This document shows positions 10,296 through 28,078 of a stretch of 64,000 bases of DNA, in pieces. The DNA lies in IMG/VR virus record IMGVR_UViG_3300009545_000018, positions 248,001 to 312,000 of that record. One strand, written 5' to 3'. A program made the position numbers and the translations under genes. Every line of letters begins with the position of its first letter. Position 1 is the first letter of the stretch. Under the pieces are notes generated by a model. The model did not search any database. It saw only the letters and a program-made list of their open reading frames with translations, and was not told the DNA's origin.

Positions 10296-10307
10296 TATAT
10301 ACTTGTT

Positions 10308-10394: not shown

Positions 10395-10404
10395 AAGGAG
10401 TATT

Positions 10405-10845
10405 ATGGAAAAGAGAAAGAATCGCTCAGATAAGTACCAGTACATACTATTAGAAACTGTATGTTCTAATGATATGATGGAAGCATTTTGTAATGAAGAT
10501 TCCATATCAGCTAGATTAAACCCATTTGATTATAATGAAACTCTTATTGAGTTAGAAGAACAACTTAAAGTTGAATTCTGGAGAGTAGTTGATACATTAT
10601 TAACTCCAAGACAAAAAGAAGTAATTAGACTTTATGCTGATGGCTATACTCAAATGGAAATAGCTAAAATGCTAAATGTGAATCAAAGCAGTATAACAAA
10701 AAGTTTGAACGGAAATGTAGATTATAAGAATGGGAAAAAAGTTTATGGCGGCGCTAGGAAAAAGATAAGAAAGATAATAGAGAATGATGACAAAATTAAA
10801 GATATCCTTAATAAAATGCAGGCTGCACGAGATGAAAAATGGTAA
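10405..10845 (+). CDS. Sigma-70 region 4-type HTH protein
   Basis: LTPRQKEVIRLYADGYTQMEIAKMLNVNQSSI. Confidence 0.8.
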   Translation: MEKRKNRSDKYQYILLETVCSNDMMEAFCNEDSISARLNPFDYNETLIELEEQLKVEFWRVVDTLLTPRQKEVIRLYADGYTQMEIAKMLNVNQSSITKSLNGNVDYKNGKKVYGGARKKIRKIIENDDKIKDILNKMQAARDEKW

Positions 10846-10894
10846 AAAGAAAGAAAAAGAGCAAAAACGAAAAGTGTTTGATATATGATCTTTT

Positions 10895-11776
10895 ATGAAA
10901 AATTGTTCTTTATGTAAAGAAGAAAAATTAGAATCAGAATTTCCTAAACAAGCTAAAGCTCCAGATAAATTACATTATTGGTGCCGAGAATGTTTTAAAA
11001 AATATAGAAAAAATAGACGAGAAAAAGATCCTCAAGGACATAAAGATTATACAAATGCCCGGAGGGAGAATCGTATTTCCTGGCTTCAAGATCTGAAATC
11101 TAATACTCCATGTATGGATTGTGGTCAAATTTATGAACCCTTTTGTATGGATTATGATCATGTGCCTGAAAAAGGTTTAAAAATAAAACCAGTAACTCGT
11201 ATGTTATTAGATAACTCTCCTAAAGAAATTATTTTAGAAGAAATTAAAAAATGCGATTTAATTTGTTTATTGTGTCATAATAAAAGAACATATGATAGAT
11301 TTAATGAAAAATTAGGAGATGATAGAAAATATCGGGCACACCAAATCAGAAATATTAATATTATAAACGATTTTAAAGATAAACCTTGTAATATCTGTGA
11401 AATTCAATATGAACTATATAATATGCAGATTGATCATATAGATCCTTCAACAAAATTGTATGATGTTTGCGATCTTAAAAATTATAAAGAATCTACTTTA
11501 TTGTCTGAGTTATCCAAGTGTCAAGTATTATGCGCCTTATGTCATCGTAGAAAATCTATTGAAGAGCAGCAAGATGATAAATATAATGTTGAAAGGCAGC
11601 TCGCACCCAAAAGAATAGAATTATTTTATGATTCTATTGCTAACACTAAAGAGTGTGGAAGATGTCATGAAATTAAAGATAGTTCATGTTTTAGAATTAA
11701 TAAGAAAACTAAATCAGGTTTAGATACTTATTGTAAAGATTGTTTTAATGAGTATAGACGTGAAAGAAGAAAATGA
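10895..11776 (+). CDS. HNH endonuclease with two tandem HNH domains between two Zn ribbons
   Basis: PCMDC..DYDH..KCDLICLLCH and PCNIC..QIDH..KCQVLCALCH; terminal CxxC..CxxC ribbons. Confidence 0.85.
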   Translation: MKNCSLCKEEKLESEFPKQAKAPDKLHYWCRECFKKYRKNRREKDPQGHKDYTNARRENRISWLQDLKSNTPCMDCGQIYEPFCMDYDHVPEKGLKIKPVTRMLLDNSPKEIILEEIKKCDLICLLCHNKRTYDRFNEKLGDDRKYRAHQIRNINIINDFKDKPCNICEIQYELYNMQIDHIDPSTKLYDVCDLKNYKESTLLSELSKCQVLCALCHRRKSIEEQQDDKYNVERQLAPKRIELFYDSIANTKECGRCHEIKDSSCFRINKKTKSGLDTYCKDCFNEYRRERRK

Positions 11777-12030
11777 CTTTAATACCTTTTGGTCCATATA
11801 GGCTCCCCTCATGCGATTCTTTTGCTAAAGAAGTTGAAGAGGGTGGAATTAAATATACTAAGATAATTTATTCTGATGGTTGTAGTTGGTATGTAAATGG
11901 AAAGTTACATCGTGAAAATGGTCCTGCAGTTATAGATATGTGGAATAAAACACAAAAGTATTATTTAAATGGGGAAGAGGTTTCCAAGGAAGATTTTCCT
12001 AAAAAATTAAAACTTTCTGCTTTTTGGTAA
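11773..12030 (+). CDS. Small phage protein with GKLHRENGPA repeat unit
   Basis: WYVNGKLHRENGPAVI..YYLNG. Confidence 0.7.
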   Translation: MTLIPFGPYRLPSCDSFAKEVEEGGIKYTKIIYSDGCSWYVNGKLHRENGPAVIDMWNKTQKYYLNGEEVSKEDFPKKLKLSAFW

Positions 12031-12132
12031 TATTTTGGAAAATATAAGTAGCTTTAATTATTAATAAAGCAGACAATATTATCAATATTTCTCTATTTAA
12101 GGTAGGGACTTATTAGGTTTACGGGAGAAGTA

Positions 12133-12594
12133 ATGACAAAGTTTGCAGTCGATTACACAGGTGTTGAGAATAAAATCTATAAAAAAGCTTATAGACTTGC
12201 TGACGTCAAAGACCAACTTGAGACCGTAGCATTTGATATTGTTAGATTTAAAGATCAAGATAAAGGGGCTGAACTTTGGCAAGTACAAAGTGCAGATGAT
12301 GGTGATTATATTGTTGCCATTTATGACAATGACGCTGAAGAAATGAAATCTGAAGCTGCTTGGGATGTTTTTGTTTCAAAAACAGCGGGAGATTTACAAA
12401 TTTCTTATAAAGGTGAACCGCTTGTTAAGGTAGCTGCATCCAAATTAGGAATTCCGGCAAAAGAATTACATAAAGTTTCTAGCTATTTACCAACAAAATT
12501 AGCTGAAAATAAAAAATTGGTAAATGCTTTATTAAATCAATTATCTCCATCAGCTAAAAAAGAGGTATTACTTAAGTACCCAGAGTTAGTTTAA
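12133..12594 (+). CDS. Hypothetical head-cluster protein
   Basis: GGAG RBS; several hydrophobic-x-K-x-A motifs. Confidence 0.7.
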   Translation: MTKFAVDYTGVENKIYKKAYRLADVKDQLETVAFDIVRFKDQDKGAELWQVQSADDGDYIVAIYDNDAEEMKSEAAWDVFVSKTAGDLQISYKGEPLVKVAASKLGIPAKELHKVSSYLPTKLAENKKLVNALLNQLSPSAKKEVLLKYPELV

Positions 12595-12609
12595 CAAATA
12601 GGACGCTAA

Positions 12610-14220
12610 ATGAGCCACGAAAAATTAAATCAACTAGTTGGTTTTATAGCTAAGAACCTGGATGATAATGAAAAATTAGCAACACCAGTTCTTGCTGCCA
12701 AATTAGCAAAATGTGTGGAAGCATTTCCCCATGATCAAACTGTTGGAGCAATTGCCACTGTTATCGATAAAATGGCAGTTAATAACACATTATTCATTCG
12801 TAAGGCTGATTTAAAGTCTCTTTATAATAAGCTTTACTCAAGAAATACTAAATTTGCAGAATTATTTAAAGATGAACTAGGATTAAAAGAGGAAGCTTCT
12901 TCTATTACTACTTATAAACGAGATGATGCTGTTGAAGTTAAAACTTATGAAGTTGCAGATCCGGTATTAGCAAACGCCTTAACTAGTGCTTTTGATAGTA
13001 GTGTTCCATTAAAAGAATATTCTCAAGTTTTAGCCACTAAAGCTCTTAAGTCAGTATCATCAACATTAAGTGGTTGGAATTTAAGACCAACTACACTTGA
13101 TATAGAAAATGGTAATGATAAATTTTTTGTATTAAAGGCTAATTATGAGACTCCAAAGGGCATTACTAGCATTTTAATTCCAGTAGAAGTTCATAATCAA
13201 AATGTTGTGGAAGCATCTTTATTTATGGGGAATACTGGTCCAGAAGAATTAAACCACGTTAATATTAAGAATTACTTAACAAGTGGTGTCGGATTAAAAT
13301 TAAAAGTTAGTGCAGCCAATGTTTTTGATGCATTAAATAATACTTCCATTAAAACTTTTGAACTTTCAGATGCAGAATTGGCATTAACTAAATTAAATGC
13401 TAAAAGAGAAGCTAATACAGAATTTTCTCAAAATCAAATTGTTGGTCAAGAAGTTGAACAAACATATAATGATGTTGTTCTTCCAGAACATCAAGACTTT
13501 ACTACTTTTGAGGCTCAATTGGAGAGTCCTCATGGTCAAGCTTATTGGCAACATGGTGCGGCTGTAACCGCAGGAATTTCTTATTTAAATAGAGAAATAA
13601 CTTCTTTTGGATTTAAAAACCCACAAATAGCAGTTGCTAAGAGTGATAAGAATACTGTTTACTACAGCGTAGCTGTTGATGGTGGAAGAATTGGATTTAC
13701 AGTTCCAATTAAAATTGCCAATAATAAAGTTATAATTCCAACTATTATGTTATGTAATGGAAGTGTGGCAGCATTTGACGCTAATACAATTAATAAATTA
13801 CGAGTAAATAATGCATCAGATTTTAAGGCGGCAGCTGTTGCTTCCCCACAATTTGCACTTAAACCAAGTGATCTAGTCAATAATATAAGAATTGCTCTAG
13901 CTGAAGGTAATCATTCTAAAGCAGAGGATGCTTTAAATGTATTATCTAATACTGGAGATACAAAAGCTTATGCGACTGGCTTTCAAATGTATTTAGATGG
14001 TTTAACTGGAAAAACAGCAGAAGTATCTACTGATAAAGAAGCTAAATGCTGTCTTATCATTAAGAGTGCTAATAGTCAACATCCAGTATGTGGTCATACT
14101 AATTTACCACTTCATAAGGTCTATCAAGATAAGCATGGAAATTGCTTACCTCTTTACAGAAGAGACATGGATGAGACCTATGATGGTGCAACATTCATGA
14201 ACTCCAAAATCTTTGGATAA
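12610..14220 (+). CDS. Hypothetical head-cluster protein with internal duplication and C-terminal Cys/His cluster
   Basis: ILIPVEVHNQNV vs FTVPIKIANNKV units; CC..HPVCGH..H..GNC. Confidence 0.7.
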   Translation: MSHEKLNQLVGFIAKNLDDNEKLATPVLAAKLAKCVEAFPHDQTVGAIATVIDKMAVNNTLFIRKADLKSLYNKLYSRNTKFAELFKDELGLKEEASSITTYKRDDAVEVKTYEVADPVLANALTSAFDSSVPLKEYSQVLATKALKSVSSTLSGWNLRPTTLDIENGNDKFFVLKANYETPKGITSILIPVEVHNQNVVEASLFMGNTGPEELNHVNIKNYLTSGVGLKLKVSAANVFDALNNTSIKTFELSDAELALTKLNAKREANTEFSQNQIVGQEVEQTYNDVVLPEHQDFTTFEAQLESPHGQAYWQHGAAVTAGISYLNREITSFGFKNPQIAVAKSDKNTVYYSVAVDGGRIGFTVPIKIANNKVIIPTIMLCNGSVAAFDANTINKLRVNNASDFKAAAVASPQFALKPSDLVNNIRIALAEGNHSKAEDALNVLSNTGDTKAYATGFQMYLDGLTGKTAEVSTDKEAKCCLIIKSANSQHPVCGHTNLPLHKVYQDKHGNCLPLYRRDMDETYDGATFMNSKIFG

Positions 14221-14222
14221 TC

Positions 14223-15119
14223 ATGAGAATATATAGATTAGCCACTTTATTTAATGTAAAATATAAATTTGCTGGAGATGTTGACAATCTTGAATCATCT
14301 CTGCGCAAAAATATTGAAACATTATGGAGATATCCAAATAGATTATTTCCAGTATTGAGAGCTTGTGCAGATTCTGGAGCTAGCACAGGTAAAGTTAAAA
14401 ATCCACATGAAAGAAAAGCCATAGCTGGATTTAAATTTTGTAAAAGATTATTAGAATTAATTGAGATATTAAATAACAATAAAGAAAATTTTTCTTTAGG
14501 AGAAATTAGAGAGATATTGTTAGTAATTGTTAATTTAATTGAACAAAATAAAGATTTGTCTTTTAGTATTGAAGGAAAGCCAACTACTAAAGGAACCTCT
14601 GATTTAGTAGCAACTCAGTTCCCTCATGTTTCGGCTCTTATTTTTGAAATGATACCCATCATTAAAAGACGTGATATCAAAGCTAGAAATGATATGCAAG
14701 GCAAAGCCAGAACAGGTTTGTCTAGAATTTTTAGTTTATCTAGCACAATGTTAGATCAAATTAAACAATTAGAAGTAATGGCTCCAGAAAAATTCACTTA
14801 CAATAGCTCAGTTGTTGATATTGACCAAGAGACTCCTAATAGATTTACTCCTCAACGAGCACCATTGGCAACTAATGATATTATTGATTTTATTAGACAG
14901 CATGGTGACGATTATGGATTATCTTCTAAAGAAGATTGGAATACTGTATTTGAACATGATCCGGTATTAAGGGAAGAAATAACTACCATTATTAATGCTT
15001 TAAATAGAGGACATAATCCAGAAAATGGATTTGCTGTCAAAAAAGAAATACAAGATATTCTACAAAAACATAAAGAGCTACAATCAACAAATGCTCATCT
15101 TTTTGAAGAAGTAGAATAA
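14223..15119 (+). CDS. Hypothetical head-cluster protein
   Basis: 298-aa ORF in operon. Confidence 0.7.
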   Translation: MRIYRLATLFNVKYKFAGDVDNLESSLRKNIETLWRYPNRLFPVLRACADSGASTGKVKNPHERKAIAGFKFCKRLLELIEILNNNKENFSLGEIREILLVIVNLIEQNKDLSFSIEGKPTTKGTSDLVATQFPHVSALIFEMIPIIKRRDIKARNDMQGKARTGLSRIFSLSSTMLDQIKQLEVMAPEKFTYNSSVVDIDQETPNRFTPQRAPLATNDIIDFIRQHGDDYGLSSKEDWNTVFEHDPVLREEITTIINALNRGHNPENGFAVKKEIQDILQKHKELQSTNAHLFEEVE

Positions 15120-15128
15120 GGAGCACTT

Positions 15129-15845
15129 ATGAGAATTGCAGAACTATTAAATTCTATAGCATCTTGGCTGGAAAGTCCAAACAATGAAGCTTTATTATTA
15201 GCAGAATATGACGAAGAGTGTTTAAAAGTTGTAGCAGAGTCTTGTGTTGCTGCTGCCACCGCTTTAAAAACAGCTGCCATTGAAGTTGAAGCTATTGAGC
15301 CTTTACCAAAATCTGTTATCACACCAGAATCAATAGAAGAAATTGCGGCATTAGCCTCTGCGTTAGATGCCTCAGGTGATCCTTCCCTTATAAAACAAGC
15401 GTCAGTATTAGATGAATTATTGCTTACAGTGGCATCTCCCCCAAATGCTTTGCAAGATAAAAAAGCAGCTCAAGATAAAAAAATTGATGAATTAACAAAA
15501 AAGTATCATAGTGCTCAAAAAGAATTAGATGAAACTCATAAAATTGCAGATTCTATTAAAGATATTGAAAAAAGCAATATGACTAAAGAGTATAGAATAT
15601 TAGAAGCTCCACTTCAAACTAGAAGTTGTCCAGATCATAGTGGAGTACAAATGGCTAGGGTGGGAGATGATTTATGGCAGTGTGAATTAGATAAAAAAAC
15701 TTATTCTTATTCAAATGGTTATACATTAAATGATGGAACTAAAGTTCCAGGTGGTGATGTTGCTAATCAAACTCAAGGACTAGATTATACTACACATTCA
15801 ATCTTTGATACTCGTTCCGGGCGCTTACAAACAAATCAGGCTTAA
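15129..15845 (+). CDS. Hypothetical protein with C-terminal Zn-ribbon-like motif
   Basis: TRSCPDH...WQCELD; LASALDASG..LIKQASVLDEL hairpin. Confidence 0.7.
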   Translation: MRIAELLNSIASWLESPNNEALLLAEYDEECLKVVAESCVAAATALKTAAIEVEAIEPLPKSVITPESIEEIAALASALDASGDPSLIKQASVLDELLLTVASPPNALQDKKAAQDKKIDELTKKYHSAQKELDETHKIADSIKDIEKSNMTKEYRILEAPLQTRSCPDHSGVQMARVGDDLWQCELDKKTYSYSNGYTLNDGTKVPGGDVANQTQGLDYTTHSIFDTRSGRLQTNQA

Positions 15846-15896
15846 ATTTAAATAATATAATTATATCAACATTCATAATTTGATATATTATAAGTA

Positions 15897-16652
15897 ATGA
15901 ATAAAACAGCCTTAAAAAAGATAATTGAGCACCCCGACAAAGACGAATTTATTTCTAAATTAGTTATGGGGTTTTCACCCAAAGATGTTCATGATTGGCT
16001 AGCAGCCAAATATACCAATGTGAGCGAATCTAAATTTGTTATTTCAGAAAACAGTATAAAATCTTTTCAATCCAATTATTTGGATATTTATAATATTATT
16101 CAAGAAGATTTAACAAAAACACGAGTTGCTATTAATAACTCTGCTGAAGATCAATTAGAGTTTGCAGTTAATAATTCTCAAGCTTATAAAGATTTGATGG
16201 TTAAAACAGCCAATGAAGAATTAGACATTAGACAGACAGTCAAGAGATTATGTGTTGCTATTGAAACACGTTTGGGTCAAGTGTTTGATGAAATTCAAGA
16301 AGATCCAAGAAATATTAATACCAAAATAGATAGAATATTTTTGGAATATGCAGAGGTATTAGGTAATATTTTAGAAAAATATTATAAATTCACAGAGGCT
16401 CCCGCCGATCAAATTGTTCAGCATAATGTTACTTTACAAGTAGTAGATCAGCATATTTCTGTATTTCATGATGTAATAAAAGACGTTTTATCTCAGATGG
16501 ATTTAGAGACTTCTTTGTATTTTATGGAAGTATTTAATGATAAAATGGCTAAGTTAAAACCACCCTCTCAGCAAGCTGTTATTCCATCAGAAGCCAGATT
16601 GGCAGAAGCCAAATTATTAAGCGAAAACATTAATAAAAAATTAAGCGAGTAA
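15897..16652 (+). CDS. Possible terminase small subunit (N-terminal HTH, helical body)
   Basis: IIEHPDKDEFISKLVMGFSPKDVHDWL; located upstream of terL; assignment inferred. Confidence 0.4.
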   Translation: MNKTALKKIIEHPDKDEFISKLVMGFSPKDVHDWLAAKYTNVSESKFVISENSIKSFQSNYLDIYNIIQEDLTKTRVAINNSAEDQLEFAVNNSQAYKDLMVKTANEELDIRQTVKRLCVAIETRLGQVFDEIQEDPRNINTKIDRIFLEYAEVLGNILEKYYKFTEAPADQIVQHNVTLQVVDQHISVFHDVIKDVLSQMDLETSLYFMEVFNDKMAKLKPPSQQAVIPSEARLAEAKLLSENINKKLSE

Positions 16653-16654
16653 AC

Positions 16655-18460
16655 ATGTTTAAATATTCAAAAAAAAATATTAATGTTTGGGAAACTCCTG
16701 ATAACGATTATAATAATCAATTATCTGTACCCTCTTCTGATGAGGATCTAATGTTATCATCAGAATTAGAATCAAAAATTGAAAATTTATTAAAATTTTT
16801 CAATGAAACTGGGATTAATTATGAAAAATATAATCCAGAAGATATTCCAAAACTTGATTTTAATAAAAAAGATGCCTATCCCAATTATCAACAATATATG
16901 CATGTTCCTGGACAACATGATACTAAAAAATGGTTACAAGCCGTTAAAGACGTATATTATAAAGAGAAAAATGGATCAGATAGAATCCAAGCTATACGCC
17001 AAACTACTGGTAGTTGGAACTTAATGGAAATTCATGATTTTCTTAATTGGCTTAAATTTTATGAAGAAGGTAATCACTTGAAATATAAAAAAGCACAAGT
17101 ATGGTATGAAAATGGCACACCAGGTTATTTTTTACATATCAAACAAGATCCGCCAAAAAAAGAAGAAACTGCTATAAATGGAAAAGATATTGATTTTGCC
17201 CGTGCCGAATCAAATAATGAAATGCCAACTTCTGAGAAAAAACAAATTATTGAAAAACAAAGACATAAAATAATTGGAAGATTAGATTCGGCTGAAAAAT
17301 TATTAAGATCCCAAGAAGGACAAATGTTTGCCGGCAAAGAATTAGAATCTTTAATGGAATCTATTTACAATTTAAAAAAGAAAATTCAATTAGTTAACAA
17401 ATTAAGCTCTACAAATAAATTATATGAAGATATGATTATTCGTGAAGCTAATAGTTTGTATAAACGTGGATTTACTAAAGCTTATAATTTATTGTATTCT
17501 GTTGCAGAAGAGCAAAACTCTCCAAGTATGAAACCAACTGATAAAATACCAACACCAAAATCTCCAGGAATGCCATATAGTGCAACTGGTGATGTAGGTG
17601 GTTTACCTTCTGTTGGTCCAGGAATGCCTCAAACTCCTCCAGATAGTGCTCCTAATGAAATGCCACCCAAACCCCAATCAAAGGCTATAGATAAATTTTT
17701 AGAAAATTTAGATACTGCAAAAATCACTACTAAAGAAGATAAAAATGATAATATGGATGTAGAAGATAATTTGGAGGTTAATGATGAGCTGCTTGTTGCT
17801 GAGGCGCAAGAAATTCCCCCTGCTGTAAAACCAAAAGCTACAGTTGCACCAATTACTTCAGAAGTTCCTAAAAAAGATACTTCTTTAGAAGTTAATGAAG
17901 AAGATGTAGTTAAAAGTAAAGAATCTCCAACTGCATCTGCAAAAGATTTTGATAATATGATTGATGCGGCTTTTGCCAATTTAACAGTTGATGATGTTGT
18001 TCTTAAATTAGAAGATTTAGCTAAAATCTTTAAAACCAGAGAAATTTCTAGACAATTATCTATTGTTGATATGATGTTAGATAGTTTGGGGTTAGCTTCA
18101 TATTTTCCATCCTTATCAGAAGCTCAAAATAAATCATTAGAATCTACCAATTATATTTCTACTCGTATAGAAGAGATTTTGTCTCAACTTCGTGGAGCAA
18201 CTGTTACTAAAGAAATTGATTTACGTGGGGATAAGAAAGAAACTAATCCGGCTGTTGAAAATATTAAAAATGTTCTAAAACAAAATGAAGAAAAAGAGAA
18301 GGCTAGAAAAGAACAAAGAAAACAACAACAAGATGCAGAATTAGATAATGCAGGTTCTCCAAATAAAGAAACTCCAGAAATTGAAATAAATGAAGATTTA
18401 GCGGCACCAGCAGTTCCAGCACCAAAGCCAACTACTCCAGTTAAGACACCAGTTGTATAA
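16655..18460 (+). CDS. Hypothetical head-cluster protein, Pro-rich and acidic disordered regions
   Basis: 601-aa ORF. Confidence 0.7.
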   Translation: MFKYSKKNINVWETPDNDYNNQLSVPSSDEDLMLSSELESKIENLLKFFNETGINYEKYNPEDIPKLDFNKKDAYPNYQQYMHVPGQHDTKKWLQAVKDVYYKEKNGSDRIQAIRQTTGSWNLMEIHDFLNWLKFYEEGNHLKYKKAQVWYENGTPGYFLHIKQDPPKKEETAINGKDIDFARAESNNEMPTSEKKQIIEKQRHKIIGRLDSAEKLLRSQEGQMFAGKELESLMESIYNLKKKIQLVNKLSSTNKLYEDMIIREANSLYKRGFTKAYNLLYSVAEEQNSPSMKPTDKIPTPKSPGMPYSATGDVGGLPSVGPGMPQTPPDSAPNEMPPKPQSKAIDKFLENLDTAKITTKEDKNDNMDVEDNLEVNDELLVAEAQEIPPAVKPKATVAPITSEVPKKDTSLEVNEEDVVKSKESPTASAKDFDNMIDAAFANLTVDDVVLKLEDLAKIFKTREISRQLSIVDMMLDSLGLASYFPSLSEAQNKSLESTNYISTRIEEILSQLRGATVTKEIDLRGDKKETNPAVENIKNVLKQNEEKEKARKEQRKQQQDAELDNAGSPNKETPEIEINEDLAAPAVPAPKPTTPVKTPVV

Positions 18461-18469
18461 TGGATTTAA

Positions 18470-19243
18470 ATGAAATTAAAAGAATTACTTTCTCAAATTA
18501 CAACTGTACAAGAGAAGATTGGAGCATCTCCTTGTTATTTATGTGGCGGAGTTCCCAGAGATCGTTATTTAAATCATTTAGAAAATATTTCAGATATAGA
18601 TTTAACTACCGGTGATAAAACTGTAGAATATTTATCACAAGAATTTACTACTGAATTACAAAAAAAATATAATGTAACCAGAACTGTTATGTCTGATGGA
18701 CATAGTAGTATTTTTATTGGAAGTCTAAAAGTAGATTTTTCCTCTAATTATAATGTTCCTAATATTGATTATTATTTAAATAAATTATCAATTATAAATC
18801 CAACAGAAATGCAAAAAGAAATGTTTAGTAGAGATTTTACTTGTAATGCATTGTTATTATCTTTAGATTTAAAAAATGTAATAGATCCTACACATAGAAG
18901 TTTTAAAGATATTGATAAAAAAATTATAAAAACTTGTTTGGATCCTGAAATAACATTAACTAATAATCGCAATAGGGTTATTAGGGCTATTTATTTGGCT
19001 TGTAAATTAGATTTTACAATTGATGACAGTATTATTAAATATGTCCAATTGCATCCGGAATCTGTAAAAATATCTACTAATAAAGTGATGTCTGAAAAAT
19101 TAAATGAAGCTTTTAAAAGAAACCCAGATAAAGCTTCGTATTATTTAACAAAAATGAATTTATGGAACTATGTTCCTATTACAGAAATAGTATATCCTTA
19201 CTACATTGCGCATGTAAAAAGTGAGGAAAATGTCAAAAAATAA
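18470..19243 (+). CDS. Divergent class II nucleotidyltransferase (CCA/poly(A) polymerase family)
   Basis: CGGVPRD..DIDLTT, SRDFTCNAL; EDxxR replaced by NNRNR. Confidence 0.85.
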   Translation: MKLKELLSQITTVQEKIGASPCYLCGGVPRDRYLNHLENISDIDLTTGDKTVEYLSQEFTTELQKKYNVTRTVMSDGHSSIFIGSLKVDFSSNYNVPNIDYYLNKLSIINPTEMQKEMFSRDFTCNALLLSLDLKNVIDPTHRSFKDIDKKIIKTCLDPEITLTNNRNRVIRAIYLACKLDFTIDDSIIKYVQLHPESVKISTNKVMSEKLNEAFKRNPDKASYYLTKMNLWNYVPITEIVYPYYIAHVKSEENVKK

Positions 19244-19814
19244 AAATCATGAATTAGATAAAGCTAGATTTAATGAGCCATTTTTTAAAAATTATAATTT
19301 ATATGATACTGATGGAAAATCAGGTCCTGGTACTGGGCTTTATCAACATATGGATGAATATAAAAGCGTAGCTGATTTTTTAAAAAAGAAAAGAAAAAGA
19401 AAATCTAAAAAGGCTAATTTAAGAATTAAAATATTAAAATCATTATTAAAAACAGCTATTGATTTTCCGGTAGATGAATCATTTAAAGATCCAATTCAAC
19501 TTGAAGAAAATAATTCTATACAAACAGCTTTGCCTATGGGTGGATTTGCTGATGAATATATTCCTGAAAATGATCAGGAGGACAAAATGCCTACAACTTT
19601 AAATTTTGGCGAAGATTATCAAAATAATGGTAAAGAATCCGAAACTATAGAAGATTTTTTAGAAAAAGTTAATCCAAGCGAATCTCCTATTTTAGGTTTA
19701 CCTGATGGTATGGATCCAGAAGAAGAGACTGCTGATAAGACACTTAGTAATAGATCTCCAGATTATGGAACCACCGATTCTGGCAATAAATTATACGATA
19801 ATATCTCTTTTTAA
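19230..19814 (+). CDS. Hypothetical protein, basic N-half and acidic C-half
   Basis: GAGG RBS before ATG 19230; charge switch at LLKTA. Confidence 0.65.
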   Translation: MSKNKNHELDKARFNEPFFKNYNLYDTDGKSGPGTGLYQHMDEYKSVADFLKKKRKRKSKKANLRIKILKSLLKTAIDFPVDESFKDPIQLEENNSIQTALPMGGFADEYIPENDQEDKMPTTLNFGEDYQNNGKESETIEDFLEKVNPSESPILGLPDGMDPEEETADKTLSNRSPDYGTTDSGNKLYDNISF

Positions 19815-19877
19815 TAAAATATAATTACTACATATAAATGCATAAGAATGAATAAGATTTTGTCTGAGGTACCATAA

Positions 19878-20780
19878 ATGACACTAGAATCAGTTGCACA
19901 AGAATTAATAGTTTTAGAACCAGTAGCTACTGCTCCGCATAACATGTCTATGGTTCCATTAGAAGTAATGGATGAGACATTAGCACAGCCAATGAATATG
20001 AATTCATTAGAGGTTGATGAACCAGGAGAAATTGCTATTGTTATTGATGATTTGCCCGGCGCCCCCCGTGGAACAAGCGATCCAGAGCCACCACTAGAGG
20101 TTGTGGAAGAAGATAAAAAAGAAGACAAAAAAGATGATGAAAATGAAGCTCAATCAAAAAAACCAGAAAAATGGGATTGGTCTTCTAAAGGGTCTGAAGG
20201 ATTTATACTTTGGGTAAAAGAAAGAATTGATGATGTCCCTAAACATTCTGGTTATGATACAGCAGGATTAGAAAGAGCAGTGTCTTATCTTGATAAATTA
20301 GATGCTGAAATTTCAAAAGCTATGAGATTGGATGTAGATGGTGATTTGGATGCCAATAAAGTTGAAGAAGTTCGTGCTCAAATTGAAAATGGCATTTCAA
20401 AATTACATGATCGTTTAGATAAAGTAAAACAAAGCAAGAAAAAGTCAAAGAAGAAAAAAGCTGAACAAGAAAATGCTTTAGTTAAAGAGGGACAAAAAAT
20501 TACTGGTGTTCAAGGTGTTTTTGTCACTGTTCCATTATTAATTTCTAGAATTGCAAGAGTTTGTATTAATGGAACTGTTTCTGCAGGTCATGATATTGAG
20601 GATTTATATAAAAGACAAGTTGACAAGTATAAATTAACTGATCGTGAGCAGGCTGAGGTTCAACAATTATTATTCGATATGGGTTATCCAGTTCGTCAAG
20701 ATAGAGGCTATATGGCTGATGAAGATGTTGATATGTCATCAAGTGATAATTTTGATTGGGCGGCTAATTACAAAGGTTAA
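19878..20780 (+). CDS. Hypothetical head-cluster protein
   Basis: 300-aa ORF with GAGG RBS. Confidence 0.7.
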   Translation: MTLESVAQELIVLEPVATAPHNMSMVPLEVMDETLAQPMNMNSLEVDEPGEIAIVIDDLPGAPRGTSDPEPPLEVVEEDKKEDKKDDENEAQSKKPEKWDWSSKGSEGFILWVKERIDDVPKHSGYDTAGLERAVSYLDKLDAEISKAMRLDVDGDLDANKVEEVRAQIENGISKLHDRLDKVKQSKKKSKKKKAEQENALVKEGQKITGVQGVFVTVPLLISRIARVCINGTVSAGHDIEDLYKRQVDKYKLTDREQAEVQQLLFDMGYPVRQDRGYMADEDVDMSSSDNFDWAANYKG

Positions 20781-20783
20781 TTT

Positions 20784-21434
20784 ATGTCAAAATATAATAG
20801 ACATCAATCAGTTGTTTCAAAACACTCTGATGCACAACAAGATGAAGACAATTGGATTAATAAATTAGAAAAATCTTTAATTAAAGATGCAGTTCAATCA
20901 CGTCAAGTTGATGATTATTTATTTCATCAAATAAATAATATAATGAATGGAACAAAGTCTAAATATTCAACAGTTGAAGAAGCCGTAGAAGATATGAAAG
21001 CTAGAAGTGGTTATAGCAATCATGTTACTAAAATGAATAAAGTTTCGGAAAATGAAGATAATAATAAAAAAGTTGCATCAGACTCTAATGAAGTAAAGTC
21101 TAAAAAATCATCTACACCAATAGTTATTCAAAAATGTCCACAAATTAAAAATACTTTAGAAAATTTTATAAGAGATACTAAAGGTAATGTATCTATTCCA
21201 GCAATTATTGAAAAAATAAAAAATATTCATGGTAAAGATATTTCTGAAGCTAAAGATTGGGATGAAGATAATTTTGTTAAATTAGTAAGTTATTTGAATT
21301 TAAGAGCAAAACAACAAAATCCTGCAAATTATGAAAATCATACTAATTTAGGGACGATGGATCAGACAATTAATGATGATGCAGACCCTTCAAATACAGA
21401 TGCATTTCATGCACTTATGCCCTTCTCAAATTAA
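20784..21434 (+). CDS. Hypothetical head-cluster protein
   Basis: 216-aa ORF. Confidence 0.7.
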   Translation: MSKYNRHQSVVSKHSDAQQDEDNWINKLEKSLIKDAVQSRQVDDYLFHQINNIMNGTKSKYSTVEEAVEDMKARSGYSNHVTKMNKVSENEDNNKKVASDSNEVKSKKSSTPIVIQKCPQIKNTLENFIRDTKGNVSIPAIIEKIKNIHGKDISEAKDWDEDNFVKLVSYLNLRAKQQNPANYENHTNLGTMDQTINDDADPSNTDAFHALMPFSN

Positions 21435-21453
21435 TTTATTATATAATAAATTA

Positions 21454-21915
21454 TTAACTTTTATTATGTGGACAATAGCCAAAAAATCCTTTAGCACAAT
21501 TACAGTTATAGCATAGTAATTGATAATTATCTTTTGGAAAATTATTTTTTATTAACCATCTATAAAGTTTTCCACCAGTCCCTTGTTTAGTATTTTTTCT
21601 TTCTTTAGCACCATTATTATTGATATGATCAATTGTTAGAAATTCTATAGTATCTTCTCCACAACAAGCGCATTTTCCGCCATATTCTTTTATAATTAAA
21701 ATTTTATTATTAAATTCATATATTTTTTGTTGATTTCTAATATAATCAGTATTATTTAAATATTTAATTTTTGCCCGTTCTTTTGCACAAATGTTGCACA
21801 AATACTTGCCCCGATTTGTATTATATTTTTTAGAATTATTTTCATTTAATATAATTTTGCAATCAATACATTTTTTATCTTCATTTTTCTTGTTACTATT
21901 AGTTTTTTGTCGCAT
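21454..21915 (-). CDS. Free-standing HNH endonuclease
   Basis: YGGKCACCG..LTIDHINNNG..YQLLCYNCNCAK. Confidence 0.88.
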   Translation of the reverse strand: MRQKTNSNKKNEDKKCIDCKIILNENNSKKYNTNRGKYLCNICAKERAKIKYLNNTDYIRNQQKIYEFNNKILIIKEYGGKCACCGEDTIEFLTIDHINNNGAKERKNTKQGTGGKLYRWLIKNNFPKDNYQLLCYNCNCAKGFFGYCPHNKS

Positions 21916-21918
21916 ACT

Positions 21919-21932
21919 AATAATTCTGCATA
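21919..21932 (+). promoter_or_regulatory. Candidate late-promoter motif ATA-N5-GCAT(A/T), representative copy
   Basis: AATAATTCTGCATA; related copies precede at least seven other genes. Confidence 0.45.
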
Positions 21933-21961
21933 AGTAATAGAACTTTTGCAGAATTTACAAG

Positions 21962-23818
21962 ATGGATAATAATTTATTTAATAGATTAAAAAAACAATTA
22001 CTCAATCTAGATCCAGTTAGTTTTGTGGAGAATTATTTAACATTAGATGGAAAGCCATTTAGGCTCCACAATAATGGGTATAAACCCTTCGCTGACATAT
22101 ATCGTTACATTGGAATTAAAGCATTAGAACCAAATTCTAAGCCTGTTATTTTGGTTAAAGGTCGTCAGGTAGGTGGAACTACTATGGCTAGCGCCCTCGA
22201 AATGTATTTTATGGGCTCTGGTATATTTGGTATTGGTGATAAGCCGCCTATTAGAGTTATTCATGCTTTTCCTCAATTAGAACTTGCAGCAGCCTATTCT
22301 AAAACAAAACTTAATCCAATGATTTCTTCCTCTCTTCAATTAGAAGATACTGAGAAGAAGCCCGGCGCTAAAATTAAATCTATCATGCAATCTTTAATGG
22401 ATCAAACTAGTGCCACCAATGATTCATTACATTTTAAACAATTTGTAGGCGGAAATCATATTTGGGTAGAATCTACTGGCTTAACTGGTGATAGACTTAG
22501 AGGTCGTACTGCGGATGTTATCTTCTTCGATGAAGTACAAGATACTAGCAGTGAAGCCATGGGTAATTCATTGAAGATTTTAACTACTGCTAAATATGGA
22601 AAAGCCGGCAAAGGAGTACAAGTATTTTTTGGAACTCCACGTCGTAAAGGTTCAGATTTTCATAAAATGTGGCAGGTTTCTTCTCAACAATATTATTATT
22701 TAGGTTGTCAAGATTGCAAAAAACATTTTCCTTTATATACTCCTGAATCAGATGAATGGGAAAAGATTTGGATTACTGGGTTTATTGTTAAGTGTACACA
22801 TTGTGGTTGTGAACAAGATAAACGTGAGGCAGCTGAACGTGGCAAATGGGTAGCTTGTAAAAATCCTGATGATGATGACTGTCAAATGATTGGCTTTCAC
22901 ATTAATCAATTGTATATGCCCACTTTTACTAAAGAAGATATTATTAATGAAAAGCCCGGCATTCATCCAATTAACACTGATAGAGTATATAAAAATGAAG
23001 TGTTAGGAGAATTTTTTCAAGGAGACACTTCTCCAATTACTATTGAAGAGATTAGAGAAAAATGTGGTGAACCTAATCGTAAATTTAGAGCGTCAATTGC
23101 TCCTGGCGAAGAACAAATCGTAGTTTGTGGCATTGATTATGGTGCTAGAAATGACTTAGAACAATTAGCCAATCCAAATAAAGCAAAAGTTACAGGACAA
23201 TCTTATAGTACAGCTGTTATTTTATCGGCAAAAGGTCCTAATCTATTATCTATTGAATTTGCAACAAAATTTAAAAGAAACGATATGGAAAGTAAGAAAG
23301 GCATTATTGATCAATTAATGAGACAATATAGTTTACAATTAACTATTGGAGACATTGGTTATTCTAATGATTTTTCAGAATTAATGCATACTTCTTATGG
23401 TGATAGATATTTAGTTTCTAGGGCTCATAATAAAATAAATGGTCATATTAAATATAATACAGAATTATTTCCTAAAGAAATTCAATTTGAAAGAGATCAT
23501 TATATAGCCGAATTATATGCTTTAATGAAAAATGGAAATATTAAATTTCCATTTGGAGACTATGAGAAAATCGCGTGGCTAATACAACATTGCGCTAGTA
23601 TGGAAATAAAGCCCTCAATTTCAAAATTTGGTGATCCTACTATACATTATATAAAGGGAGGTACACCAAATGACGGGTTTATGGCACTATTAAATGCGTA
23701 TATTGCTTATAAATTTGTTTTAACTAAAGGATTTACTAATAATAATCCAATTTTACAACAAGTAGGTTTTCAAAATAAACCACTGATTGTGGCGGGTTAT
23801 ATTCCAAGAAGATTCTAA
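21962..23818 (+). CDS. terL: Terminase large subunit (GpA-like, Zn finger)
   Basis: KGRQVGGTT, LRGRTADVIFFDEVQD, FGTP, CxxC..CxxC, VCGIDYG nuclease. Confidence 0.92.
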   Translation: MDNNLFNRLKKQLLNLDPVSFVENYLTLDGKPFRLHNNGYKPFADIYRYIGIKALEPNSKPVILVKGRQVGGTTMASALEMYFMGSGIFGIGDKPPIRVIHAFPQLELAAAYSKTKLNPMISSSLQLEDTEKKPGAKIKSIMQSLMDQTSATNDSLHFKQFVGGNHIWVESTGLTGDRLRGRTADVIFFDEVQDTSSEAMGNSLKILTTAKYGKAGKGVQVFFGTPRRKGSDFHKMWQVSSQQYYYLGCQDCKKHFPLYTPESDEWEKIWITGFIVKCTHCGCEQDKREAAERGKWVACKNPDDDDCQMIGFHINQLYMPTFTKEDIINEKPGIHPINTDRVYKNEVLGEFFQGDTSPITIEEIREKCGEPNRKFRASIAPGEEQIVVCGIDYGARNDLEQLANPNKAKVTGQSYSTAVILSAKGPNLLSIEFATKFKRNDMESKKGIIDQLMRQYSLQLTIGDIGYSNDFSELMHTSYGDRYLVSRAHNKINGHIKYNTELFPKEIQFERDHYIAELYALMKNGNIKFPFGDYEKIAWLIQHCASMEIKPSISKFGDPTIHYIKGGTPNDGFMALLNAYIAYKFVLTKGFTNNNPILQQVGFQNKPLIVAGYIPRRF

Positions 23819-23884
23819 CTATATCTGTTCATTGATATATTATTTACTAAGCATAGTAGGTAGGTATATTAGGAACGAGGAAAA

Positions 23885-25693
23885 ATGCCTTTAGACAAAA
23901 CTGGTAAAAAATGGATAGGACCATCAAATTCGGAAAATTATTTAAATAGTAAATCTGAGGTCCCACAAGTTAGTGCTATTATGGCAAATAATATTTCTCA
24001 ATACAGAAAAGAAACTTTGGGAAAAGAAGTTGAAAGGGGATTATTTAGAGACGGTTCAAATAATGCTAAAACTTCTGATAATGAATTAACAGTTAATTCT
24101 AATGTTACATCATCAATTGGTGTGAATAAATTTGCTCAGGTAGTTAGTGGTGGTAGCGGAGGTTTTCGTGGTGGTATGGGAGATACTGTTAAACAAGGAC
24201 CAGAGGTATATTCTCCGCTTTGGTTAAATAGTAATTTAAACTTATCTCGTGATAGGGCTATAATTAATGCATGGTGTAGAAGTTTTTATGCACTTAATCC
24301 ATTTGTACATAATGCTATTAATCTTCATAGTACTTATCCAATTAGCAAATTAAATATTAAATGCCCAAATAAAAATGTAGAAAAATTCTTTAATGATATG
24401 ATTGAAGAAATTGATTTAATGAATATTTGTGTACAAATTGCACAAGAATATTGGTTATTAGGTGAAACTTTTGTTTATGCAGAATTAGATGAAAGTAAAG
24501 GAAAGTGGAACCGTTTAGTTATTCAAAATCCAGATCATATGTTAGTTAAAGCAACAGTATCTGCACATGAATCTATAATTATGTTACGTCCAGATAACAA
24601 TTTAAAAAGAATTGTTTTTTCTAATAAACCTTCAGATATTGAACAAAGAAAACAATTAAATCAACATATTATAGATTGTATTAAACGCGGTGGTGATATT
24701 CCATTGGATAGTTTTAATGTTTCTCATTTGGCTCGTAGAATTAGCCCGTATGAAATAAGAGGAACAGGATTACCAGTTTGTATATTTAGACAATTAATGT
24801 TATTTGATAAATTAAGAGAATCAAAATATGCTCAAGCTGATAATATGATTAATCCTTTAACATTAGTTAAAATTGGATCTGCTGATTTTAAACCAACCGT
24901 TGCAGATTTAGAGGCTTGGCGTCAAATATTTGAACAGGCACAAAATGATAAAGATTTTAAAGTTTTTACTCATGAAGGAGTAGATGTTACAAAAGTTGGA
25001 AGTGGCGCGGGCATTTATGATATTTCCGGAGATATTACTCAAATTATTAAAGAAATTTATGTTGGTTTGCAAGTGCCACCTGTACTAATGGATGGTGGTG
25101 CTGATACCACTTATGCTAATGGTGGCGTAGCGTTAGATGTTTTAAGACAACGCTATATGCAATTTCGTAATATGTTATCTGCTTGGTTAAAAAGAAAAAT
25201 TTTCGCACCTATTTCTAAAATTCAAGGATTTTATGAATATCATAATGGAGAAAAACAACTTATTGTTCCAGAAGTAGATTGGAATCATATGTCGATTTTT
25301 GATGCGGGTGATTATATTCAAAATTTAGTTACTTTATCTCAAGGACAAGATGATCAAAAGAGAGTATCATTACATACTTTATATAGATCTATGGGTCTAG
25401 AATATCAAGATGAAGTTAGAAAAATTAGAAAAGAAAGCATTCAAAATGCTATTTCTAAAAAAGAAAAAATATCTTTAGATAATATGGATTTAAATTCTTT
25501 GAGAGCTTTAGATGATGAGGATGAAATACCAGAAGCAGAAGCTTTGGTTGGTTCAGCGCCAGGTGCTGTTCCAGGAGAAAATCCATTATCATCTCCTTCT
25601 GCTGGTCCAGAGGCTCCACCTAGTGGACTTCCAGGGTTAGATTTATCGCCCCCTCCCTCAACTCCACCTCCTGGTACGCCCCCGGCACCATAA
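23885..25693 (+). CDS. Portal protein
   Basis: Follows terL; NPFVHNAINLH, EYWLLGE, HLARR.SPYEIRGTG; Pro-rich tail. Confidence 0.85.
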   Translation: MPLDKTGKKWIGPSNSENYLNSKSEVPQVSAIMANNISQYRKETLGKEVERGLFRDGSNNAKTSDNELTVNSNVTSSIGVNKFAQVVSGGSGGFRGGMGDTVKQGPEVYSPLWLNSNLNLSRDRAIINAWCRSFYALNPFVHNAINLHSTYPISKLNIKCPNKNVEKFFNDMIEEIDLMNICVQIAQEYWLLGETFVYAELDESKGKWNRLVIQNPDHMLVKATVSAHESIIMLRPDNNLKRIVFSNKPSDIEQRKQLNQHIIDCIKRGGDIPLDSFNVSHLARRISPYEIRGTGLPVCIFRQLMLFDKLRESKYAQADNMINPLTLVKIGSADFKPTVADLEAWRQIFEQAQNDKDFKVFTHEGVDVTKVGSGAGIYDISGDITQIIKEIYVGLQVPPVLMDGGADTTYANGGVALDVLRQRYMQFRNMLSAWLKRKIFAPISKIQGFYEYHNGEKQLIVPEVDWNHMSIFDAGDYIQNLVTLSQGQDDQKRVSLHTLYRSMGLEYQDEVRKIRKESIQNAISKKEKISLDNMDLNSLRALDDEDEIPEAEALVGSAPGAVPGENPLSSPSAGPEAPPSGLPGLDLSPPPSTPPPGTPPAP

Positions 25694-25761
25694 TAAAATC
25701 AAATAATTAGTATGTATAATATAGCATTATTTTGTTAATTGCGGACTATTAGAGGATCATC

Positions 25762-27003
25762 ATGCAGAAAACTGCCCAAAAAAGAAGCATTCTTAATAAA
25801 CTTAAAGAAATGAGCAATGTTAGTGGCATTGCTGCAGAAAAATTTTTTAATCCAGAATTTGAAAGGGTTATGAATAGTTTGCGCGCTACTGATGATAAAA
25901 TCAGAGCAATTGCATCAGGAAAAACTATTGAAGATCAAGATCCTGGAGATCCGGTCTCATTAAAGGATTTAATTAAAGATGCTAAATCTAACTTAAATAG
26001 AAGAGAGTATATGACTGCTATTGCTTCTTTAGGACGATTTCATAAAAAATTATATGATATTAGTCAGTCTATTGATGCATTAAATGTAGATGTAGATCAA
26101 GTTCATCATGATTTTTTATTTAAGGACTTAGATGATGAACAAAAGAAACATCTTTCAGAAATAAAATCACGTTTTGCCATTGCTCGTGGTCATAGTTTAA
26201 TATCACAAGCCGGTATTATGGATTTTTTGCATAATATTTCTTCTGAAAGAGGCAGAGCATTAGCGGCATGGGAAAAAAGATACCCCAAACAAGTATCTAA
26301 ATTAAAAAAAGATACTGCTAATTTAATTTCTAAATCTGAAAGTATATTATCAATCATCTTATCTACCTTAAAAGAGATGGCAAGTGCACGTGCATCTAGA
26401 AAAGTAGATGATTATGTTAAATTTGGTGAAAAATTAACTTCTTTGTATAATAATTACGATAAATCTTTTAGAGATCATTATGTGTCTAATGTTAAAGGAT
26501 TTTTAGAAAAACAAGAATTATTATCACCAAATAAAAAAATTGATAATACTGATATGGGTAAACAAGAAATAACCCCCAATTCTTCTGAAGTTCCTGATTT
26601 AGAAGTTTCAGAAGAAAATGAAGCTATTCCTTTAGTTAATACAAAATCGCCTAATACTGTGCCTGCTCCAGCCCCTGATTTTAGTTTAGAAGAAGCCTAT
26701 GAAAATGTTACACAACCAAATTCTAGTGCATTTGCTCCACCAAAATTACCATCAGGAATGTCTGTGCCAAATCAAGTTGTAGTTCCTCCAGCTCAAGAAG
26801 ATGCCCATGAGGATACCTTAGAGGAAGAAATACCTCCAGTTAAATCTGCACATCAAAAATTTATTACTTCATTGGAAACAATGTCAAATGAAAAGCCAGA
26901 ATTACTTGCTAGTAAAATTCGTGTTTATGCTAAATCTATTCAAGAATCTGATTTAGCAACCTCTATCGAATTATTAAAATTAGCTAAATTAATTAAGGAG
27001 TAA
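25762..27003 (+). CDS. Hypothetical head-cluster protein
   Basis: 413 aa; starts MQKTAQ. Confidence 0.7.
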   Translation: MQKTAQKRSILNKLKEMSNVSGIAAEKFFNPEFERVMNSLRATDDKIRAIASGKTIEDQDPGDPVSLKDLIKDAKSNLNRREYMTAIASLGRFHKKLYDISQSIDALNVDVDQVHHDFLFKDLDDEQKKHLSEIKSRFAIARGHSLISQAGIMDFLHNISSERGRALAAWEKRYPKQVSKLKKDTANLISKSESILSIILSTLKEMASARASRKVDDYVKFGEKLTSLYNNYDKSFRDHYVSNVKGFLEKQELLSPNKKIDNTDMGKQEITPNSSEVPDLEVSEENEAIPLVNTKSPNTVPAPAPDFSLEEAYENVTQPNSSAFAPPKLPSGMSVPNQVVVPPAQEDAHEDTLEEEIPPVKSAHQKFITSLETMSNEKPELLASKIRVYAKSIQESDLATSIELLKLAKLIKE

Positions 27004-27006
27004 TAA

Positions 27007-28068
27007 ATGGCAAAATTGGATTCCAATTTCTACCAAAAATTACTTCAGCTATCTGATAATGTTGGCATGAAGCCAGAAGACATTTTAAATGTTATGGCGG
27101 TGGAATCTAATTTGGATCCTTCTGCTCACAATCCTAATGGTCATGCATCTGGTTTAGTTCAAGTTATGCCAAAATTTCTTTCCGGATTAGGATTTCATGG
27201 AACTCCAGAAGATTTTAGAAATAGTTCTGCTTCATCTCAGCTTAATGTTGTTGAGAGATTAATTAAAAATATGATGAAAGTTAATGGCGGACCTTTAAAT
27301 TCTGCCGCCCAATATTATGTGGGCAACTTTCTACCAGTAGCTTTGAAGTTACCAGGTGTTCGTCAAGGTAAAGCAAGTACTATTATTGTTTCTAAAAATC
27401 CCATAGAACCTCACTTACCTAATATTTCTATACAACAAGAAATGAAATTTTATAATGCTAATCCTGGATTAGATTTTGATCATGATGGAAATATTACTTA
27501 TGGTGACATTCAAAATGTATTAAAAGCCGCCCAAAACAAAAAAAATTATCAAGATGCTGTAGCCGCTCTTAATAAATTTAGAAGCTTACCAAATGAAGAT
27601 ACTTTTAATCAATTAGCAATTAAAAAGCCACAAACAAATAATAAAGTAAATACTTTATTGGAAAATTATTTAAACTTAATTAATGCGAAAGAATATGTTA
27701 ATATGAAAAAACCGGAGTATAATAATGCTGTTATCAAAATAACAGCAAATTCATTAAATGAATCTTTAGAATTTGCTAGAATATTATCACTGGCATTAGA
27801 TGAGGAATTATCAGCTAAGGTTAGTATTCATTCTGATAATAATTTAGTAGAAGTAGAATGTGATATTCCAGGACCTACTAAAGATTCTTTTGCTGTAGCA
27901 GAACAATTAACAAATTCTTTAGCTGAAATATTTTTTGATGTTACCAAAAAAATTGGTGGAATCAAAATTAAAACACAATTAATTACCAATAAAAAGTCAT
28001 CACATCAAGTTGTTGATTTGAAAACTACTGACGTTGAACATCGCAAATTTTTGTTAAAATTTGTTTAA
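27007..28068 (+). CDS. Lytic transglycosylase (SLT/lysozyme-like) with C-terminal extra domain
   Basis: VMAVESNLDPSAHNP.GHASGLVQVMP; NPGLDFDHDGNIT. Confidence 0.85.
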   Translation: MAKLDSNFYQKLLQLSDNVGMKPEDILNVMAVESNLDPSAHNPNGHASGLVQVMPKFLSGLGFHGTPEDFRNSSASSQLNVVERLIKNMMKVNGGPLNSAAQYYVGNFLPVALKLPGVRQGKASTIIVSKNPIEPHLPNISIQQEMKFYNANPGLDFDHDGNITYGDIQNVLKAAQNKKNYQDAVAALNKFRSLPNEDTFNQLAIKKPQTNNKVNTLLENYLNLINAKEYVNMKKPEYNNAVIKITANSLNESLEFARILSLALDEELSAKVSIHSDNNLVEVECDIPGPTKDSFAVAEQLTNSLAEIFFDVTKKIGGIKIKTQLITNKKSSHQVVDLKTTDVEHRKFLLKFV

Positions 28069-28078
28069 GGAAAATATA

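Follow-up and report, generated by a model that had tools for sequence, protein, structure and literature searches.

What would a class II nucleotidyltransferase of only 257 amino acids (aa) do in a gene array that runs into the terminase, portal and major head protein genes of a huge phage? The gene in question (18470-19243, plus strand), hereafter the short transferase, lies in a 64,000-nucleotide (nt) stretch, the window, which comprises bases 248001-312000 of the 447,763-bp IMG/VR virus record IMGVR_UViG_3300009545_000018 (31% G+C; 100% complete by CheckV) from a rhizosphere metagenome. The major head protein (44383-45393, on the strand of the array) shares 54% identity with gp27 of Bacillus phage G, which marks the virus as a huge relative of that phage. 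Class II CCA-adding enzymes are textbook polymerases, in which a protein template reads the nucleotides and a tRNA-binding body measures the product. The short transferase has the head and neck domains of this class only. Our preferred answer, put forward tentatively and with somewhat less than even confidence, is that it is a predicted active RNA 3'-end nucleotidyltransferase whose nucleotide choice is not strictly C,C,A, which works with, or is loaded into the prohead by, a disordered partner protein, and which acts early in the next infection.

The open reading frame (ORF) of the short transferase starts with ATG and ends with TAA. Its assignment to the class II nucleotidyltransferases, first made in a reading of the letters of the window alone (the original prediction), is borne out by matches to the PolyA_pol head domain PF01743 (E 2e-11, 44.7 bits against a cut-off of 23, residues 22-153) and to phrog_2244, the PHROG family for tRNA nucleotidyltransferases (E 2e-14). 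A profile built from the short family matches solved CCA enzymes at 4e-14, and its matches to solved CCA-adding, A-adding and poly(A) enzymes cover the head and neck portion only. The AlphaFold (AF2) model has a predicted local distance difference test score (pLDDT) of 87.5 and is aligned by Foldseek with class II CCA enzymes at a probability of 1.0 over ~240 columns, again head and neck only, with query TM-scores of about 0.67 to 6QY6, 7OTR, 4WBY and 1MIV. These structural alignments end at about residue 240, and the viral structural neighbours are all longer, canonical-type enzymes. PF12627 and PF13735 were absent from the protein in the family-model search, which also left it below the cut-offs of the CCA equivalog NF009814 (51.6 bits against 290) and of TIGR02692 (40.2 against 438.8), and below those of the PcnB models TIGR01942 (34.2 against 305.65) and NF008634 (21.1 against 702).

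The catalytic motifs are present as originally read. Motif A (18545-18601, plus strand) consists of GGVPRD at residues 26-31 (18545-18562) and the catalytic DID at residues 42-44 (18593-18601), and motif B is SRDFTCNA at residues 120-127 (18827-18850, plus strand). Residue invariance was scored in 30 relatives at 61-82% identity, in which G26, G27, R30, D31, D42, D44 and the run from S120 to N126 are all invariant; the six motif A residues are also kept across 94 representatives. The window itself encodes a long enzyme for comparison, a canonical CCA-adding enzyme of 415 aa (46541-47788, minus strand), recognised as such in the original prediction and here by NF009814 (321 bits against a cut-off of 290) and by PF01743, PF12627 and PF13735. 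Motif B of the short transferase aligns with ARRDLTINA of this enzyme; the first Arg of the canonical RRD is replaced by Ser family-wide, the second Arg and the Asp are retained, and D122 is the counterpart of the third of the three catalytic carboxylates that class II enzymes use (PMC3925840). When the two proteins are aligned by BLASTP, NNRNR (motif D position, residues 165-169; 18962-18976, plus strand) falls under EDGLR, and the stretch with the T.R.E..Y..R.P loop is exchanged for unrelated sequence that is partly helical in the AF2 model, so that the substitution at EDxxR, the missing loop and the short length were all correctly noted at the outset. All three catalytic Asp residues (D42, D44 and D122) are kept, and the flexible loop, the body and the tail are lost. 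The body and tail domains bind the acceptor and T arms of tRNA (PMC3925840, PMC8563995).

Class II CCA-adding enzymes of bacteria and eukaryotes (e.g. PDB 1MIV, 6QY6, 3H37) are the best sequence and structure matches of the short transferase, with which they have in common the head and neck fold, motif A, the motif B Asp, motif C and the motif D Arg. It differs from them in the absence of the flexible loop, of both the E and the D of EDxxR and of body and tail, and in its length of 257 aa where theirs is about 400. Its gene, moreover, belongs to a phage morphogenesis module and is coupled to that of a disordered partner.

The short form is not a peculiarity of this genome. A word search recovered 735 relatives, of which the best 120 are 63-84% identical, 243-260 aa long and encoded on contigs of up to 476 kb, and at E<=1e-30 an exhaustive search with a profile found 113 representatives of clusters at 50% identity, most of them 240-260 aa in length. 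The gene was found at 171 IMG/VR loci. There are 66 invariant columns in the 30 relatives, including all motif A and B residues, the DP of motif C, N166, N168, R169 and R172, and dN/dS against the nearest relative (L086) is 0.146 at a dS of 0.80; the gene is under purifying selection. One explanation entertained originally, that this copy is simply decaying, is excluded, as is a decaying duplicate of the canonical CCA gene in particular, by the invariant catalytic residues, the dN/dS of 0.146, the hundreds of relatives of the same length and the presence of the gene in all five large genomes. The short gene is present in each of these five near-complete genomes (394-481 kb), the long CCA gene in just one of them, which argues that the short gene is core and the canonical gene accessory in the lineage. 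To call the short gene the second copy, as had been done, is hence misleading. On its distribution, it would be a core gene of the phage-G-related huge-phage lineage, in a module that ends at the terminase and portal.

The conservation also bears on whether the protein is an enzyme at all. A pseudoenzyme that retains the fold as a structural or scaffolding component of the head would suit the scaffold-like disordered partner and the location in a morphogenesis module. Invariance of GG..RD, DxD, SRD, DPT and the motif D Arg across deep divergence would, however, be unexpected without catalysis, and we regard this explanation as extremely doubtful.

In the source databases, proteins of the short family are labelled generically as poly(A) polymerase or tRNA nucleotidyltransferase, and PHROGs holds no dedicated family for them. 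A literature search found no paper that describes the short family, or a class II enzyme of head and neck only tied to phage morphogenesis, and a jumbo-phage survey lists canonical CCA enzymes only.

If the protein is catalytic, which nucleotides would it add? The nucleotide-reading motif had been said to differ from EDxxR, with the proviso that homologues might have EDxxR intact. All close homologues differ from it: position 165 is variable (S, T, N, A, V), and N166, N168 and R169 are invariant. The proviso applies in part to the basal members of the family, which keep DDxxR or xDxxR. Together with the invariant templating Arg (R169), these basal relatives make the description template-less too strong, and the motif D Arg is essentially invariant across the 94 representatives. 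In a quick maximum-likelihood tree (IQ-TREE, midpoint-rooted) the short family forms one group (support 97), separate from canonical-type sequences. Motif D reads D-D-P-R-R or x-D-P-K/R-R in the basal clades of this group; in a crown group nested within it (27 rows, the window protein among them) the Asp has been lost (Asn in 18, other residues in 9) and Asn-Arg stands at positions 168-169. From the direction of change on this midpoint-rooted quick tree, loss of the Asp is probably derived within the short family. By alignment, R169 is the templating Arg, here retained, N166 takes the place of the templating Asp, and N168 is invariant in a clade-specific way.

The lost Asp is the residue that recognises the amino group of C and A, and nucleotide choice may be altered as a result. 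This is supported by a library of the human CCA enzyme that offered Asn at all three positions, in which no replacement of Asp or Arg survived A/CCA selection (PMC11784652). Specificity in E. coli poly(A) polymerase depends mainly on the Arg of the corresponding motif: it is abolished by Arg-to-Ala and hardly changed by Glu-to-Ala or by Asp-to-Ala (PMC2532741).

CC-adding enzymes are naturally without the flexible loop and vary at the first template position (PMC11784652). In the loop and the first position the short enzyme looks CC-adding-like, with the key Arg kept and the second position remodelled. As in CC-adding enzymes such as Aquifex aeolicus AaS (3WFO-3WFS), the D..R pair that reads CTP is kept in the basal members of the family; the clade of the window protein, by contrast, has Asn or some other residue in place of the Asp that contacts the 4-amino group of CTP, and body and tail are missing. 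The profile of the short family matches CC-adding structures at E 0.002, more weakly than CCA- or A-adding ones.

These hallmarks are what would be expected if the protein simply repaired tRNA 3' ends in the cytoplasm, with a partial activity of the CC or A type, and was made late and never packaged; its position near the terminase would then be historical and the partner a mere neighbour. DDxxR or xDxxR in the basal members fits such an enzyme, as do the 37 tRNA genes of the phage genome and its three RNA-ligase-family genes, and in the four of the five large relatives that have no other PF01743 gene the short enzyme could be the sole end-repair enzyme. The protein nevertheless has no domains with which to bind the acceptor and T arms, its clade has lost the templating Asp, variants of which went unrecovered in the A/CCA selections, and the RNA-ligase genes are far from it. 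Taken with the fusions described below, this makes the repair enzyme rather unlikely. Since the three RNA_ligase genes (PF09414, above cut-off; genome positions 44638-45156, 140899-141393 and 201161-201634) sit elsewhere in the genome, the phage has a separate capacity for joining nucleic-acid ends, at a distance from the short transferase. About 30 of the 37 tRNA genes encode their own CCA.

Loss of the tRNA-measuring domains and of the stop/switch loop would favour unrestrained tailing, and the protein belongs to the superfamily of bacterial poly(A) polymerase I (PcnB), as its weak TIGR01942 match (34 bits against 305) indicates. It might thus add tails to RNA non-specifically, in the manner of a poly(A) polymerase or with mixed nucleotides, and so mark host RNA for decay or block tRNA acceptor ends as a shut-off or toxin-like effector. 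PcnB and the short transferase have in common the motif D Arg, the main determinant in the former (PMC2532741); the latter differs in having no C-terminal RNA-binding domains and in not keeping EDxxR. MenT-type toxins are reported to add nucleotides to acceptor ends and thereby to block translation (PMC11541572, PMC11162799), and the MenT/AbiEii toxins are alike in principle, being small proteins without a measuring body that carry out template-independent addition to tRNA 3' ends. They are of a different family, and the PADLOC defence-system models, which include the AbiE/MenT type, gave 0 families at E<=0.01 with the short transferase; there is no antitoxin context, and no immunity or antidote gene is evident. 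Tailing of this kind, which we consider decidedly unlikely as a separate explanation, overlaps the reading we prefer and differs from it only in the direction of the effect.

Where the gene lies may say as much as what it encodes. Around the short transferase is a same-strand, tightly packed array that begins with recombination and replication genes (primase at 9534), followed by a sigma-like gene (10405), an HNH gene, six genes termed g1-g6, the transferase, the partner, g9, g10, a further HNH gene, the terminase and the portal; it continues with an SLT-domain protein (27007), a 1153-aa protein with a protease domain (30881) and the major head protein (44383). The conserved module opens with the sigma-factor-like protein (10405-10845, plus strand), which has PHROG sigma-factor matches and an orthologue at the same place in relatives. 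Genes g1-g6 (12133-18460, plus strand) always precede the transferase and are orthologous and collinear in loci L003, L006 and L008 and partly so in L007, L009 and L010; g9 (300 aa) and g10 (216 aa), which fill the interval between partner and terminase (19878-21434, plus strand), likewise have collinear orthologues in relatives. The large terminase (21962-23818, plus strand; PF05876, phrog_675) and the portal (23885-25693, plus strand; phrog_16240) follow. By orthology, the order sigma, g1-g6, transferase, partner, g9, g10, terminase, portal is kept even where the transferase is only 32-39% identical. Phylogeny and synteny in related phages, proposed originally as a check, thus gave a single group and a stable neighbourhood. 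The placing of the gene among head genes is right in that the array leads into the terminase, portal and head protein, and needs qualifying for the immediate neighbours (12133-21434), which match no family: g1-g6, g9 and g10 have no Pfam or PHROG match, and g2 has zero matches across the phage collection. ESM Atlas feature searches with g2 and with the short transferase gave no useful result, and a promoter and terminator scan of 10000-28500 gave counts not above those of shuffled sequence. A search for expression turned up a single sample, a rhizosphere DNA sample that is probably the source, and no RNA runs.

A constant position directly upstream of the terminase and portal could point to action on DNA or protein during packaging, such as addition of nucleotides to genome ends or nucleotidylation of a head protein, and the family-wide Ser in place of the first Arg of the RRD ribose motif could be taken the same way. 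Motif B nevertheless retains its second Arg and its Asp, and no enzyme with a class II head domain is known to act on DNA or on protein. We consider such a role very unlikely.

The partner is the gene most closely tied to the transferase. It encodes a disordered protein of 194 aa (19230-19814, plus strand) in which, from its sequence and an alignment of orthologues, short conserved motifs are separated by variable acidic stretches and accompanied by a Lys/Arg patch. Its most likely start, the ATG at 19230, stands behind a GAGG ribosome-binding site and 11 nt ahead of the TAA of the transferase, which gives an overlap of 14 nt. Counts of fusion and neighbourhood were taken over 80 IMG/VR loci, in which the arrangement repeats with overlaps of a few to 14 nt. 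Because an ATG 5-14 nt before the stop is a constant feature, the link between the two genes fits translational coupling by termination-reinitiation. A programmed frameshift that would join the two was considered and rejected, as there is no conserved slippery site at the overlap.

In 24 of the 80 loci the transferase and partner form one open frame (439-783 aa), and fusions occur also among the 50%-cluster representatives (e.g. P0121-P0123). Such fusions are hard to explain if the transferase is an ordinary tRNA-repair enzyme. The partner portion of a natural fusion is predicted to be disordered, with a pLDDT of 30-60; there is no helical bundle, and the idea that the partner is a divergent body or tail domain was dropped on this ground. 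When the first 96 residues of the partner were used as a query, 250 proteins were recovered and, among the matches listed, all were fused to PF01743 or stood alone; a general cargo tag is therefore unsupported within the length range searched, which left out proteins of the length of the protease protein. At loci L026, L028, L033 and L039 an extra ORF of ~200 aa lies between transferase and partner, and the partner is shifted ~600 nt downstream.

In most relatives the partner, or the fusion junction, is headed by a module of ~25 residues centred on A-Y-F-Q-G. In the window phage, a motif scan and BLASTP located this module twice in the protease protein and nowhere else in the genome. That protein (1153 aa; 30881-34342, plus strand) has a head-maturation protease domain at residues 105-213 (phrog_18299, E 1.6e-14) and carries the module at residues 406-429 (32096-32167) and 487-514 (32339-32422). 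The modules are 68-79% identical over 25 aa by BLASTP, some alignments extending over 80-95 aa, and four of the five large relatives have the module in the same place in their protease proteins. Within 10 kb of the transferase in the 80 loci, it occurs at the transferase-partner junction only. Beyond residues 105-213 the protease protein comprises, besides the two modules, an Ala/Pro-rich linker and a long acidic region like a coiled coil. It is probably a protease-scaffold polyprotein, in which the AYFQG sites are candidates for self-processing or docking sites.

The more divergent members of the short family, whose genes still occupy this module, have C-terminal fusions to Peptidase_M15, Phage_lysozyme2, PcfJ-like or RNA-repair-type HAD phosphatase domains. 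Cell-wall hydrolase domains on an enzyme that acts in the cytoplasm would be expected of proteins that leave the virion during infection, and they too are hard to reconcile with an ordinary repair enzyme. The RNA-repair HAD phosphatase domain of representative P0241 (30.8 bits against a cut-off of 25.6) is the single informative enzymatic fusion and counts against DNA or protein as the substrate. Two other distant representatives, P0189 and P0190 (loci L009 and L010), are 936-1117 aa long, with long C-terminal extensions in which repeated modules are split by K-T-A-S/Q-like motifs; both lie upstream of the terminase and may be polyproteins.

What these lines of evidence suggest together can be set out as a sequence of steps. 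Because of the homology to RNA 3'-end transferases and the fusion in P0241, the enzyme is assigned a role at RNA ends: it would add nucleotides to the 3' ends of RNA (the acceptor ends of tRNA or the ends of other RNAs), lacking the part with which such enzymes usually measure tRNA, and its nucleotide choice would differ from strict C,C,A. The partner might provide contact with RNA through its Lys/Arg patch, or recruitment into the prohead. Synteny with the terminase and portal, the motif common to the partner and the protease protein, and the cell-wall hydrolase fusions lend the link to head assembly independent, though indirect, support. The enzyme would enter the head, might be freed by the prohead protease through a cut at the AYFQ-G junction, and would act on RNA at the start of the next infection, the effect being either repair of RNA ends or the marking or poisoning of host RNA.

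Enzymes that are carried in a phage head and injected with the DNA include the T4 Alt ADP-ribosyltransferase, the T4 internal proteins and the N4 virion RNA polymerase. For the short transferase, T4 Alt and the N4 polymerase offer an analogy only, without homology; alike is the proposed logic of entry into the prohead by a targeting or processing signal and of delivery with the DNA. In relatives the first module of the partner also occurs in the prohead protease protein. The present case differs from the injected T4 and N4 enzymes in that packaging is a proposal and the partner of the window phage lacks this module.

Several observations weigh against this interpretation. Asp-to-Ala barely shifts the specificity of E. 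coli poly(A) polymerase (PMC2532741), so the choice of nucleotide may stay A or C. Transferase and partner are separate chains in most relatives, and the partner is predicted to be disordered even within a natural fusion. A gene position near the terminase does not by itself prove packaging. The window's own partner is without the AYFQG module, so that the link to the head is weakest in the very phage considered here, and that the module is a cleavage or targeting signal is a guess. Lastly, a search for the short transferase in phage G, the nearest cultured phage, found the gene absent, and no cultured relative carries it.

A bolder form of the preferred reading is unlikely as a whole: a minimal transferase loaded into the capsid by way of a protease-processed partner or pro-region and injected, with an x-N-x-N-R pocket that adds a non-CCA nucleotide to the 3' ends of tRNA or other RNA within seconds of infection. 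Such an enzyme, if it exists, would pre-empt host defences that target tRNA or shut down host translation. With or without this extension, the short family amounts to a natural experiment in which head and neck have long been retained and the measuring body and switch loop discarded, together with the base-reading Asp in one clade; it bears on what a bare class II core does and on which nucleotide an N-x-N-R pocket selects. If the link to the head is correct, an RNA-modifying enzyme would join the few activities that phages are known to bring in, ready to work, together with their DNA, with a bearing on how huge phages handle tRNA-directed host defences. In relatives of phage G, the AYFQG module may prove useful for studying the specificity of the prohead protease or the loading of cargo.

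The conserved module is interrupted by two HNH endonuclease ORFs, one after the sigma-like gene (10895-11776, plus strand) and one just before the terminase (21454-21915, minus strand); at these positions relatives show a GIY-YIG gene or nothing.

The canonical CCA gene looks like an accessory, possibly mobile, insertion. Adjoining it on the minus strand is a free-standing ORF with LAGLIDADG_3 and helix-turn-helix domains that resembles a homing endonuclease (45450-46496). Both genes oppose the direction of the structural genes and are flanked by the gene for the major head protein and that for a giant repeat protein, and the long CCA gene of the one large relative that has it occupies the same relative position.

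Elsewhere in the genome, outside the window, two neighbouring tRNA genes (genome positions 212881-213035) have the anticodon CUA, are like amber suppressors and are labelled Pyl by ARAGORN; the ORFs of the window read cleanly in code 11, and recoding is therefore not assumed. The giant repeat protein (47892-52574; 1560 aa) has ~20 near-identical Ser/Gly/Asn/Thr-rich repeats of about 60-70 aa and is probably a fibre or surface protein. After it come an ORF of 1135 aa and then an apiosidase-like glycosidase with a collagen-binding-type domain (56353-57828).

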